Below are positions 7,029 to 15,195 of a DNA stretch of 25,445 bases, one piece after another. The stretch covers positions 1,091,563-1,117,007 of the forward strand of contig JAWQFM010000020.1 of assembly GCA_033442325.1 (NCBI GenBank), written 5' to 3'. The translations under genes and the position numbers were made by a program. Each line of letters opens with the position of its first letter. Positions within the stretch are counted from its first letter, which is position 1. The notes beneath the pieces are model-generated. The model searched no databases, was not told the DNA's origin, and saw nothing but the letters and a program-made list of their open reading frames with translations. This stretch comes from Salpingoeca rosetta (Eukaryota; Protista; Choanoflagellata).

Positions 7029-10000
7029 CTATGACATGGCCATGCCGTTGGTGGTGAACGCCATCACCTCCAAGATGGACGGGCGGTGCTCCACGATGCG
7101 CTTTAGAAGCTGTCGGTGGCCAACGCAAGCACCACGACGGTTTGATGAGCACGCATTGCGTATTGTATGGGTTGTGGGGTGAACTGGACAGAGCTGAAGA
7201 TATCATGGAGGGGCGAAGCAGGACAGCAATGGAAGAAGGCCCATCACATCGTCTGCCTCCATGTTCGATTCGCACCATCACCCAGCAGATACACACCCAC
7301 CCACCCACCCACCCACCCACCCACACACACACACACACACACACACACACACACACACACACACACACACACACACACACACACACACACACACACACAC
7401 ACACACACACACACACACTCACACACACACACACACACACACACACACACACACACACACACACACACACACACACACACACACACACACACACACACAC
7501 ACACACACACACACACACACCTCGTTAATGTAAGTCTCGAGCAAGTTGTTGTCCTCCTCCTGTTTGTGCACATGCTCCTTCAACTCCTCCGTCGACAGGT
7601 CCGGGAAGGAGGCTGGGTCAACTGGCTCATCTTGCTGGAGGCGTGGAAGACCCGTCATAATGGACGTCTGCACGCCGCTGTCCTGCTGCAACACTTCGCC
7701 CAGCAGCTGGTCAATGTATCGCCGGAACCGGCGCGCCTCCGTCTGCCGGATCTGTTGATGTGTGATAGGGAAGGTGGTGGGGTTGTGGTGGCGATGAGGA
7801 GGAAGAGGATGATGCGATCGGAAAACAATAGCAGGCGACGTTGGTGGACTGAGACAAGCACACACACACATCCACCCACCCACCCACACACACATCCACC
7901 CACCCACCCACACACACATCCACCCACCCACCCACACACACCCACACCGACACCCACACTCACACCCACAAACAAACAAACAAACAAACAAACAAACAAA
8001 CAAACAAACAAACAAACAAACAAACAAACAAACAAACAAACAAACAAACAAACAAGCACACAAGCGCCGTGCCCCAGCACCTCGAGTGTTTCAATGAGCG
8101 TGTCTCTGTCGACGACAGGCTGTTGCGAAGACCCGTTCGCTTCATCATATGCATCCAGCGCCTGGCGTTTCTTGTACTGCAATGGTGGTGATGGTCGGAC
8201 ACGAAGGTCAGATGAAGGAAAATGCGGGAAGAGAAGGACGCAACTGCTTGCAATTCATTGGTGGTGATGGCAGGTAGTGGTCATCATGTGTGCCATCGGC
8301 TCGATTGGCGAGGTGTTACCTGCTCCTTCAGCGCTGCCAACTCCTCCTTCTGCTCGCGCCTTAAGCGTTCGATTTCATCACGATGACGATCGGCGCCTTG
8401 CATTTCAAGGGCAGCGATGCGAGAATCCTGGGCGTCCAAACATGAACGAACAACAGCGCACATGAGTTGATGTGTTGGCGCTTGTAAAGTGTTGAACACG
8501 ACCACAACCACGACCACAACTACACTCGCCCAGCACAAGCGCTGGGCGATGATGATCACCTTGTCCTCAATGCGCAGGAGGAGGACATTGATCTTCTCAA
8601 AGATGATTTTGTTGGAGAGATCGCGAACTTGCTGCGTCAAGTCCTGCACCGCCCGCGACTGATGGTGATGATGGTGACGATGGTGATGGTGAGGAAGGAA
8701 GACTGCACAAGCAATATGGCTTCACACCAAGCAATCACGCCATTCCAACACGCAATGAATACCAACTCAATACCGCGATCACACACGTCAGCTCACAACA
8801 GCACAATGATACACAATCATATATGTTGATACCACCTGGAGCCAGACCTTGTCGTCGAGGTCAGCTTGCAGCTGGCGGGCGGTGCGCTCCGCCTGCAGTT
8901 TGCTCGAGAGCACGTCCGACAGCTGCTGGCCCATCTCCCGCACCTGCGCATGCGCAGACGCAGCCGCTGTTGCACGACCGCACGCAGATGTGTGCACGCG
9001 AAGCAGTAGACGGGCGAGCGTGAGCGAGGTGCTGTTACAAGGGGGTCCATAAGGTGTTCATGCGAAGCAATCCACCTCAAAGCTCGCACACACGCACACG
9101 CATGCACACATACACAGTACACACACATGCATGCACATGAACAGCACTATCACACGACATATTGTCGTCACTCACCGCTGCTGGCCTCAGCCTTTTCCTT
9201 CTCAAGCGCAGCGTACTTCCGCTGCAGGTTTGACAGCTGCTGCTGCTGCGTCGTCATGTTTGCCTGATGGGAAGTCAAAACCCAAGTCAGCGACGATGAA
9301 ATGGGGTGAGAGACTCTGATTCCAAGCTCCCTTTACACACACACACACACACACACACACACACACACACACACACACACACACACACACACACACACAC
9401 ACACACACACACACACACAGAGGGTCCCGACCTCGTGTTGCTTGGCCTTTTCCGAGTGCTGCTGCTGGTCTTGCGTCGCCTTCTCCTGTGCCGCCGCCAG
9501 CTGCTTCTGCGCACGCACAAGCTCCTCCCGCTGCGATGAAACTGAGGTGGTGGTGGTGGTGTGTGTGTGTGTGTGTGTGTGTGTGTGTGTGTGTGTGTGT
9601 GTGTGTGTGTGTGTGTGTGTGTGTGTGTGAAATAGGTGTGTTGCTGATCAACAGAACGCATTCTCGACACAAACACACCCATTTGCACCCCTTCATACAC
9701 ACACACGCCATCAGACGCTTGTGTGTGCGCCTCACATTGCCTTCGCAGCTGCTTCATCTCCCGTTTGATGTCTGCGTTCGTCGCTGTCAGCGTCTCCACG
9801 GCTGCTGCTTTCGCTTCAAGTTCCTTCCTCGCGTCGGCAAGGTCCTCTGCCGCCTTTCGCGCTTTGCGCTCATGTGTGCGTGCTTTCGTCTCTGCGCGTG
9901 TGCGTGCGCCCTCTGCTGCCTCAAACTCGAGACGAAGGGCAGCCATGGCCGCAGAGTGGTCGTGCTCCCGCTTGCTCAGCTGGGCCTGGCGGTGTGTGTA

Positions 10001-13000: not shown

Positions 13001-15195
13001 CCCCATCACGACGACGACGACGACCACCACCACCACATTGATGGCGGCGTACCTGGGCCTGGCTGCGGCTGAGGCGGCGGTGAATGTCTGAATCTGCGAG
13101 CAGTGGAGATGGATCGATCCACGCGTTGTCGTCATCATCGACATCGCTCACCTGGCGTTGGTGGTGGGAGGCGAGGCGTGCAAAACAACACGGTATGCAG
13201 AGTACACACGGCAAGGTGAGAGGTGGGGTGGTTGTGACCAGCACAACCGCTGTAAACAGGAGCCAACCAACCAACCAACCAAACAGCCAATCAACACTTG
13301 AGAGCCAACCATGCGTGTGTCTGCGGTGTTTGCGAAGGAGAGCATCTGCTGCAGTTCTGAGTGCAAATCGTCCCGCTGTGCAGTTGCACTCAACAGCTCA
13401 TTCAACGACGCCTGAATACCACCATCACAACGGTCACGGTGGTAGTGATGATGATGACGATGATGACGATGACGATGATGATGATGATGATGATGATGAT
13501 GATGATGATGATGATGATGATGATGATGATGATGATGATGATGATGATGATGATAGTGGCGGTGTACGTGTATACGTTAGAAAAAGTGATTGGCATTGGT
13601 AGTGGGCTGGGAGCAAGCGGAATAGATAAGGCATGGGAGCACCAGGGGCGGCGTAGTGGTGTGATGAGAGGGGCACTCGCATGCAACGACTGTCCCGAAC
13701 CTTGAGGTTGTTAATCTGGGCGCTTTGGCGATGTGCCTTGATCTCGTGTTCCTTCAGCAGCACCTCTGCTGCCTCCCGCTGCTGCTTCTCTGTTAGCGTG
13801 ATGATGGCGGCGGCGGCGGCGGTGGTGGTGTAGAAGGCATGGAGTGCATTAGCGGGCATGAAACAGTCACACACACATACACATACAACCTCAACCACAT
13901 CGCATCACACCATGCTCGGTTATAGCACTAGCAGCAGCAGCAGCAGCAGCAGTTGCGGCGCACCAATTTGAAGGCGCTTTCGAACTTTGTCCAGTTCTGG
14001 CGCCCAGAAGTAGTTGATGGACATGAGGGCACCAGAGAGCTTGTAGCTCGTCACGTCAAGCTGAGGGCACGCGGCACACGGCACACGGTGGCGTGAACAG
14101 CGCGAAATACTGTGTGAATATACACGTCACGTAGGAAACATGCTCCACCACCAGCAACATCATCATCATCGTCGCGCGCACACACACGCACGCACATACA
14201 CACACATACACACACACACACACGCACATACACACACATATACATACATATACATACATATACATACACACACACACACACACACACACACACACACACA
14301 AACTACAAAACACAAGCCGCACCTGCTTGTGTGCGTCAATGAGGTCGCGGCGGGCGGCGAGCAGATTGTCCTGCAGATACTTGATCTCCGCTGCCTCAAA
14401 CCGGCGCAAGTCGTCCGTCGACTGCATCGGGGACGATGGCGATGGCGACGAGGCAGCCCCGCGGCTGTACTGCAGCATCTTGGGTGGCTGGTACAGCGGG
14501 TGGTAGGCGTGCGCAGGTGGGTGGTGGTGGTGATGGTGTGGGGCTGTTGCTGCAGTAGACGCTGGAGGAGGAGCAGGCCGACCTGCCTGGCGGTGCTGGT
14601 GGTGGTGGTGTTGCTGATGATGATGTTGTTGTTGCTGGTGGGCTGCATAGGGGCTGCGTGGCGCAGGCACGAGGCCCGCGCCCTGCTGGCTCGGGTGGGC
14701 CACGGAGGTGGCATAGAAGGTCTTTGGCGACGTGCCCGGATACGCTGGCTGGTGGTTGCGGAAGGCGGGCTGCTTCTCAACAGGCGTTGGCCGGGAGGAC
14801 CCTGGCTTTGAGCCGGGATTGGACGAAGCCACAGGTGTCTTTGCTGGGCTGTGTATCACATCCTCCCACTGCAGGGCGTCCGTGTTGGCCCGGCCCGGGC
14901 CTCGCACGCGGTCGCGTAAGGGGCTGCTGCGCATCTTCCTGCTGGCACGTGGCGACTTGCCCGACGATGAGGATGACGTTCGGGCATGTGGGCGGCGCGA
15001 TGCCTCTGCACTGCCATGGCTGCCGTATTGCTGTGCTTGCTGCTGTTGTGGGGTACGCGGTGGCGACCATTGCGCGTGGGTGTGTCCGCTCATGCTGGTG
15101 CTGCCTTGCTGCCGCTGCTGCTGGTGCTGGTGCTGGTGCTGTGGGTGTTGACCTGCTGTTGCTCTCTGTTGTGAACGCGCTGGCACGTCAGGCAT
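7029..15195 (-). CDS. ERC1: ELKS/ERC/CAST family coiled-coil scaffold (~1232 aa) with C-terminal FIP-RBD-like Rab-binding motifs
   Basis: 22 GT-AG exons in consistent phase: 15195-14323, 14060-13964, 13789-13701, 13411-13310, 13151-13053, 12816-12602, 12385-12236, 12056-11969, 11812-11756, 11578-11483, 11275-10856, 10653-10576, 10342-10175, 9985-9736, 9541-9432, 9263-9176, 8966-8848, 8643-8560, 8427-8320, 8176-8081, 7751-7521, 7109-7029 (3699 nt). Motifs: LDVTSYKLSGALMSINYFWAPEL (cf. recalled ERC1 LDIKESKLSSSMNSIKTFWSPEL), LLLRIEDKDSRIAALEM (cf. LLAAISEKDANIALLEL), YINELLKRIVEHRPSILEV. The start codon could lie further upstream. Confidence 0.82.
7322..7520. repeat. Long (CA)n/(GT)n microsatellite beginning at the donor of the last ELKS intron
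   Basis: About 200 bp of near-perfect dinucleotide repeat; many similar tracts occur across the window. Confidence 0.95.
7968..8055. repeat. (CAAA)n tetranucleotide microsatellite, intronic
   Basis: Seen directly. Confidence 0.95.
13446..13553. repeat. (GAT)n trinucleotide microsatellite, intronic
   Basis: Seen directly, inside ELKS intron 13412-13700. Confidence 0.95.

Follow-up and report, generated by a model that had tools for sequence, protein, structure and literature searches.

PTSG_07538 of the choanoflagellate Salpingoeca rosetta, a probable orthologue of the ELKS/ERC/CAST active-zone scaffolds

A probable choanoflagellate relative of the animal ELKS/ERC/CAST proteins

The ELKS/ERC/CAST proteins comprise mammalian ELKS1/ERC1 and ELKS2/ERC2 (CAST), as well as Drosophila Bruchpilot and Caenorhabditis elegans ELKS-1, two active-zone scaffolds of the same Cast family (PMC8377282, PMC5830537). 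Condensation of ELKS1 is driven by its disordered N-terminus (residues 1-137), and the protein requires this condensation for its role at the cortex (PMC11297316). The structure 8IJ9 shows the Rab6-binding domain of ELKS1 (residues 849-922) bound to Rab6B as a monomeric helical hairpin (78-residue chain), and charge reversal of D871 or K905 abolishes Rab6 binding (PMC10267580). A 2022 review, citing Burkhardt and Sprecher 2017, calls Cast/ELKS 'animal specific' (PMC9750855). Another study of that year, which surveyed the cortical microtubule-stabilising complex, found ERC1 homologues from Porifera onward and concluded that this complex arose with Metazoa; its data set included one choanoflagellate, together with NCBI BLAST checks of other organisms (PMC9145010). 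Here we describe PTSG_07538, a minus-strand gene of the choanoflagellate Salpingoeca rosetta. It lies in a stretch of 25,445 nucleotides (assembly GCA_033442325.1, contig JAWQFM010000020.1, positions 1,091,563 to 1,117,007), which we call the window and in which all gene coordinates below are given.

We assign PTSG_07538, with a probability of roughly 85%, as the S. rosetta orthologue of the animal ELKS/ERC/CAST proteins (ERC1/ERC2, the N-terminal half of Bruchpilot and C. elegans ELKS-1). On this assignment it is the first non-animal member of the known family. Membership is indicated by three collinear blocks recognized through two independent libraries and conserved in five species. The blocks exceed what chance would give, since the N-terminal block matches the Pfam family Cast with an E-value of 7.6e-5, the C-terminal region matches the solved structure of ELKS1 with an E-value of 1.4e-9, and the terminal RBD-FIP domain reaches 41.1 bits (cut-off 23.3). 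The initial annotation, made from the DNA alone, had proposed a full-length ERC homologue carrying three ERC-like blocks in the ERC order in a choanoflagellate-like genome, and had noted that Erc/Cast is often scored as animal-restricted. These proposals agree with the source organism, with the two publications of 2022 (PMC9750855, PMC9145010) and with the positions of the blocks in the protein: SINYFWAPEL within residues 313-344, a late block at 1055-1155 and the FIP-RBD at 1208-1247. Both ends of the Cast profile are found in order, ELKS1 is the best match among solved structures and the FIP-RBD is significant.

The order of the parts matches that of mammalian ELKS1/ERC1 and ELKS2/ERC2, from the disordered N-terminus through FW.PEL, the coil and the hairpin to the FIP-RBD. 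In PTSG_07538 the predicted succession is a proline- and glutamine-rich disordered head of ~310 amino acids, the ERC signature, a coiled-coil rod, a Rab6-type hairpin, a degenerate FIP-like helix and the FIP-RBD. The head is longer than the 137-residue disordered N-terminus of ELKS1 (PMC11297316). Bruchpilot differs by a long extra C-terminal half; this protein and C. elegans ELKS-1 were compared by description only. The coding parts of the gene are as follows.

7029..15539, minus strand: coding span of PTSG_07538, 23 exons, 1258 amino acids, exact match to the public protein P0001
15480..15539, minus strand: annotated first coding exon (MRGQTSAPSPHRTAKRYEQQ), taken from the annotation and required to reproduce P0001
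14323..15198, minus strand: exon 2, low-complexity proline-rich residues 21-312 (Q/H/S/P/A), then the beginning of the Cast-like region (DDLRRFEAAEIKYLQ...)
13964..14060, minus strand: exon 3, ERC N-terminal signature (LDVTSYKLSGALMSINYFWAPELDKVRKRLQI), whose sole Pfam match is Cast, profile positions 19-45
8848..13789, minus strand: exons 4-18, central coiled-coil rod of about 700-750 amino acids, matched by many coiled-coil Pfam families
8081..8658, minus strand: exons 19-21, Rab6-binding-domain-like hairpin (P0001 residues ~1070-1134), C-terminal end of the Cast profile
7521..7751, minus strand: exon 22, degenerate FIP-like helix (RRYIDQLLGEVLQQD), conserved GLPRLQQD linker and first half of the FIP-RBD
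7029..7109, minus strand: exon 23, remaining half of the FIP-RBD (LLKRIVEHRPSILEV), C-terminus ...NGMAMS and stop codon

The two ends of the Cast profile and the Rab6-binding-like hairpin

The Pfam Cast profile (PF10174) has 766 positions and a gathering cut-off of 29.1 bits. At its start lies the N-terminal signature FW-x-PEL-basic. This signature is present in PTSG_07538, where it reads …SINYFWAPELDKVRK… and includes the SINYFWAPEL peptide of exon 3, and FW[AG]PEL is invariant in four choanoflagellate species. Residues 285-420 of the S. rosetta protein align with profile positions 1-109 (21.6 bits), with Cast as the top Pfam match, while the full-length protein gives 17.6 bits (E 1.2e-3) for residues 296-577 on positions 2-261. 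The corresponding pieces of Choanoeca flexa (positions 1-149, 38.5 bits) and Didymoeca costata (positions 20-100, 33 bits) are over the cut-off, as is the full-length C. flexa protein P0005 (32.4 bits). The late block falls at the very end of the profile (positions 676-764), with 13.3 to 27.8 bits in five homologous proteins; the lowest of these scores is that of S. rosetta (positions 681-764) and the highest that of C. flexa. The matches to the start and to the end of the profile thus follow its order and lie ~835 residues apart, compared with 766 profile positions. For S. rosetta, the N-terminal and hairpin pieces sum roughly to ~35 bits, each being under 29.1 when taken alone.

The sequence between these ends is of very different composition from the head. 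Residues 1-300 contain 39 prolines and are 58% P/Q/S/H/G/T, whereas residues 345-1135 contain 3 prolines and are 71% E/K/R/Q/L/A/D. The composition is that of a disordered head followed by a long helical rod, and a Pfam scan finds no domain in the low-complexity region of exon 2. A six-frame Cast search of the S. rosetta assembly (55.4 megabases, 68 contigs) did not report the PTSG_07538 locus, because its exons are too short. A search of the PDB with the choanoflagellate N-terminal alignment found no ELKS N-terminal fragment and gave spurious matches.

The late block, LLLRIEDK|DSRIAALEM...RQALDAYDE, is encoded by exons 8658-8560, 8427-8320 and 8176-8081 and contains …FEKINVLLLRIEDKDSRIAALEM…KEQYKKRQAL…. 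A profile built from seven choanoflagellate C-termini was compared with all PDB sequences. Its top match was chain 8ij9_C, which is ELKS1 (41 bits), followed by the RBDs of Rab11-FIP3, FIP2 and FIP1 (E 1e-6 to 5e-5), and the first generic coil appeared at an E-value of 1.5e-3. The C. flexa sequence alone also placed 8ij9_C first (E 1.2e-4). In an AlphaFold2 model of residues 1066-1258, with a mean predicted local distance difference test score of 85, the hairpin consists of the helices H2-33 and H38-71. Foldseek superposed this hairpin on 8IJ9 with a target-normalised template modelling score of 0.81-0.82, a root mean square deviation of 2.4-2.6 Å and 28% identity, and 8IJ9 was the only target of high probability (0.95-0.96).

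The hairpin is ~30% identical to ELKS1 853-918. D871 and K905, the two residues critical for Rab6 binding, have the identical counterparts D1088 and K1121 in the HMMER alignment, in which L864, I867, A875 and R911 of the ELKS1 interface are also identical in S. rosetta; E869 and L879 are conservatively replaced by D and M. By homology, the hairpin of PTSG_07538 is predicted to bind Rab6.

Homologues were gathered by a search with exon 22, by cluster look-ups and by a word-indexed protein search, the last of which supplied the Salpingoeca helianthica protein. They comprise proteins from five named choanoflagellate species, S. rosetta included, with both orders represented, as well as several environmental fragments. 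The four other named species contribute the following proteins.

Choanoeca flexa: P0005, 1194 amino acids
Salpingoeca helianthica: P0024, 1609 amino acids
Stephanoeca diplocostata: P0011, 838 amino acids
Didymoeca costata: P0023, 1063 amino acids

Over the last ~200 residues, the homologues share 38-51% identity with S. rosetta and 32 columns are invariant. This C-terminal module is present in a single copy in the S. rosetta genome, at the PTSG_07538 locus. P0024 and its 89% identical relative P0014 (1516 amino acids) are longer and have a well-conserved C-terminal module. Neither shows a match to the N-terminal part of Cast or an obvious FW.PE motif, which could reflect divergence or a different N-terminus.

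Several observations weigh against orthology with the animal proteins. The S. rosetta protein stays under the Cast cut-off both at full length (17.6 bits) and as an N-terminal piece (21.6 bits), and ~18 bits is attained elsewhere on the profile by generic coiled-coil open reading frames of this genome. The FW.PE motif is not obvious in the S. helianthica homologue. The Foldseek E-value for 8IJ9 is 2.2 and not significant, as is usual with short helical hairpins. Four Rab6 contacts are changed (E857 to F, S868 to E, L876 to A and M912 to Q), the position of S868 being occupied by S in most other choanoflagellates. Word-indexed searches with P0001 residues 290-1258, with the C-terminus of P0014 and with the homologue alignment gave only choanoflagellate and environmental proteins, without animal ERC; the word index and the length window probably excluded animal ERCs, so that this null result says nothing on relatedness. 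An exhaustive search with exon 22 against 1.84 billion representatives (E <= 0.001) gave 16 matches and no named animal protein, and the linker that it encodes is either lineage-specific or too diverged. Language-model, ESM Atlas feature and fold searches yielded nothing beyond generic coiled-coil or unrelated helical clusters and did not inform the assignment.

Alternatively, PTSG_07538 could be a generic coiled-coil gene whose ERC similarity is entirely compositional. Dozens of coiled-coil Pfam families indeed match the rod exons, and TMF, TPR and Spindly are among the results of the ESM Atlas feature searches. We nevertheless consider this hardly credible, as it is contradicted by the PDB search with the family profile and by the piecewise Cast matches. 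The FW.PEL motif, the looped hairpin and the FIP-RBD are not plain heptad repeats, six orders of magnitude lie between ELKS1 and the best-ranked generic coil of the PDB search, and the blocks are conserved in five choanoflagellate species.

The protein could also be specific to choanoflagellates and have acquired the module that it shares with ERC, namely hairpin and FIP-RBD, by domain shuffling, without orthology over its whole length. The central rod, which lacks family-specific similarity, is compatible with such an origin, as is the exon-22 linker (RKYIDQL...GLPRLQQD), which matched no animal protein in the exhaustive search. Against it, the N-terminal ERC signature is present too. The signature lies at the start of Cast and the hairpin at its end, separated by a rod of similar length, and it is improbable that these three blocks came together independently in an identical order. 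We therefore regard this explanation as unlikely and retain orthology with the animal ELKS/ERC/CAST proteins.

The FIP-RBD and a possible role in vesicle capture

The RBD-FIP domain (PF09457) covers residues 1208-1247, on the C-terminal side of the Cast region, and is interrupted by the last intron, with profile positions 1-24 encoded by exon 22 (7751-7521) and positions 26-40 by exon 23 (7109-7029). Its helix (…LETYINELLKRIVEHRPSILEV) closely resembles that of Rab11-FIP3 (…LQDYIDRIIVAIMETNPSILEV), and the Rab11-FIP entries 2hv8, 4uj3 and 4d0m match the choanoflagellate family profile with an E-value of 1e-6. The FIP-RBD appears nearer to Rab11-FIP3 (YIN/YID...PSILEV) than to the degenerate version found in mammalian ERC. 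A weaker FIP-like helix, RRYIDQLLGEVLQQD, lies ~45 residues upstream (16.6 bits, E 0.007), is the only Pfam match of its piece and is followed by the invariant GLPRLQQD.

These features raise the question of a Rab11-FIP-type effector, that is, a long coiled coil ending in a FIP-RBD, in which the Cast-like matches would be coiled-coil noise. RBD-FIP is the only Pfam domain past the cut-off in the S. rosetta protein, its UniRef name derives from that domain and the RBD structures of Rab11-FIP3, FIP2 and FIP1 are significant PDB matches. The class II proteins Rab11-FIP3 and FIP4 share with PTSG_07538 the C-terminal RBD and its YI[DN]xLLxRIxExxPSILEV helix. However, class I FIPs are marked by a C2 domain and class II FIPs by EF-hands, and a Pfam scan (E <= 0.01) covering the whole protein found neither. 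Unlike Rab11-FIP3 and FIP4, PTSG_07538 carries Cast-type N-terminal and Rab6-binding blocks. The Cast matches are positional (1-109 and 681-764), two orthologues exceed the Cast cut-off, and the family profile finds ELKS1 ahead of any FIP in the PDB. Moreover, animal ERCs carry a C-terminal FIP-RBD of their own, according to the domain annotation of ERC1 and ERC2. Taken together, we consider a Rab11-FIP-type effector very unlikely, and assignment to ELKS/ERC/CAST is kept.

Two other RBD-FIP helices over the cut-off were observed in the S. rosetta genome, one at G000:C17:138096-138215 on the plus strand (...LRTYIEGLMEVIIDKSPDILEHV, 30.7 bits, locus L004) and one at G000:C16:1326773-1326892 on the minus strand (...QQAYIGHLLNHVIERIPDVLEI, 25.9 bits, locus L005). 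PTSG_07538 is thus not the sole candidate Rab11-FIP of this genome. These separate genes are candidates for true Rab11-FIPs and would be useful outgroups in a tree.

A GIWA-type RIM PDZ ligand was looked for at the C-terminus of PTSG_07538 and is absent, the protein ending in ...FTTNGMAMS, in which it differs from mammalian ELKS/ERC. This ligand (…GIWA) is a trait of the mammalian B-type isoform and does not define the family. Its absence fits the report that RIM is unique to animals (PMC7456537).

These parts suggest how the protein may work. The rod would dimerise and the disordered head would promote clustering at the cortex, as in mammalian ELKS1. The hairpin would capture post-Golgi carriers coated with Rab6-GTP, and the FIP-RBD may also bind Rab11-type GTPases. 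The protein would then act at cortical vesicle-docking sites of a single-celled organism, both marking and serving them. We tentatively extend this to a scenario that is possible but, as a whole, somewhat doubtful. ELKS would be older than animals and, in the ancestor that they share with choanoflagellates, would have been a dual Rab6/Rab11 effector clustering at the cortex. There it would have defined fixed sites of exocytosis, a RIM-less 'proto-active zone'. The RIM/PDZ link and the coupling to calcium channels would have been added later, in animals, while the FIP-RBD degenerated, and the S. rosetta protein would mark apical or basal vesicle-docking zones.

An expressed, full-length gene of ELKS type in S. 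rosetta, with conservation in both choanoflagellate orders, would place the origin of a core active-zone scaffold before that of animals and bears on the evolution of the synapse. It suggests that the ancestral task of ELKS was the Rab-dependent capture of secretory vesicles and not the clustering of calcium channels. As S. rosetta is genetically editable, the function of a premetazoan ELKS is directly testable. No report of PTSG_07538 or of a choanoflagellate ELKS was found in the literature searched, a scope that did not extend to orthology databases.

Gene structure, public record and expression

The coding sequence runs from 15539 to 7029 in 23 exons separated by GT-AG introns only, and its translation is exactly the 1258-residue P0001. 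This protein is the NCBI entry PTSG_07538, named 'hypothetical protein [Salpingoeca rosetta]', and its UniRef name is 'FIP-RBD domain-containing protein'; its precomputed Pfam annotation lists RBD-FIP and a crescentin rod, Cast not being among them. The initial annotation had foreseen a generic name of this kind, and the short exons and coiled-coil composition concealed the ELKS assignment from automatic annotation.

The frames of the minus strand show a chain of short, coiled-coil-like open segments between introns rich in (GT)n/(CA)n. We translated the three frames of this strand, anchored 21 peptide segments and enumerated the in-frame GT..AG introns between them. The resulting de novo model has 22 exons from the ATG at 15195, encodes 1243 amino acids and is 99.3% identical to P0001. 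Two changes convert it into P0001: addition of the first coding exon, 15539-15480, and setting of one junction to 9735/9541. An exhaustive HMMER search with the 77-residue exon 7751-7521 also retrieved P0001 (1258 amino acids), 100% identical across that exon. The spliced coiled-coil gene of the initial annotation stands, and its length of ~1232 amino acids has to be revised, the ATG at 15195 giving 1237 amino acids and the annotated protein having 1258.

Expression was analysed by mapping two raw RNA-seq runs and two runs of assembled contigs on positions 9500-15499. RNA depth sits on the exons and is near zero across the introns. First mates of the raw reads are almost all on the plus strand, which in a standard stranded library indicates RNA of the minus strand. 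Split reads were observed at 14060|14323, 13411|13701, 13151|13310, 12816|13053, 12385|12602 and 11578|11756, and two transcript contigs of 4093 and 4405 nucleotides consist of pieces whose lengths sum to the remaining exons. Below 15103, the junctions in this interval are confirmed by reads or contigs, including those of the small exon in which the initial annotation had placed SINYFWAPEL (14060-13964). Its junction 14060|14323 is supported by raw reads and contigs and 13964|13789 by contig arithmetic, showing that this exon is part of the mature RNA. A contig covers 14323-15103 of exon 2, and the depth of ~0 above 15103 is due to repeat masking, which hides the CAG/CAC run.

According to the reads, exon 15 spans 9985-9736 and exon 16 spans 9541-9432. 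The RNA continues from a loose end at 9736 into ...TTTCATCGCAGCGGGAGGAGC on the minus strand, which corresponds to the acceptor at 9541. An alternative junction from 9706 to 9530 was ruled out by these loose ends, which show 9735 to 9541 as annotated. Downstream of 9736, the contig remainder of 1363 nucleotides corresponds to 932 nucleotides of coding sequence and a 3' untranslated region and fits the last eight exons, whose junctions are also supported by the match to P0001 and by gap-free alignment across them to transcriptome-derived orthologues.

Three features of the surrounding DNA were noted besides. In many introns of the interval 7029-15539 the donor is immediately followed by (GT)n and the acceptor is preceded by (CA)n, so that read-through frames yield long VCVCVC/THTHTH pseudo-frames that clutter lists of open reading frames. 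An assembly gap of 100 N at 15727-15826, ~190 nucleotides upstream of the annotated start codon, lies within (CA)n repeats, and sequence of the promoter and 5' untranslated region may be missing there. Finally, RNA reads of both strands, with many back-joints and loose ends, accumulate at 12918-13037, an intronic trinucleotide repeat (GAC/GTC)n, and at 14500-14699, the CAG/CAC (polyQ/H) run of exon 2. They likely result from cross-mapping of other transcripts and not from antisense transcription.

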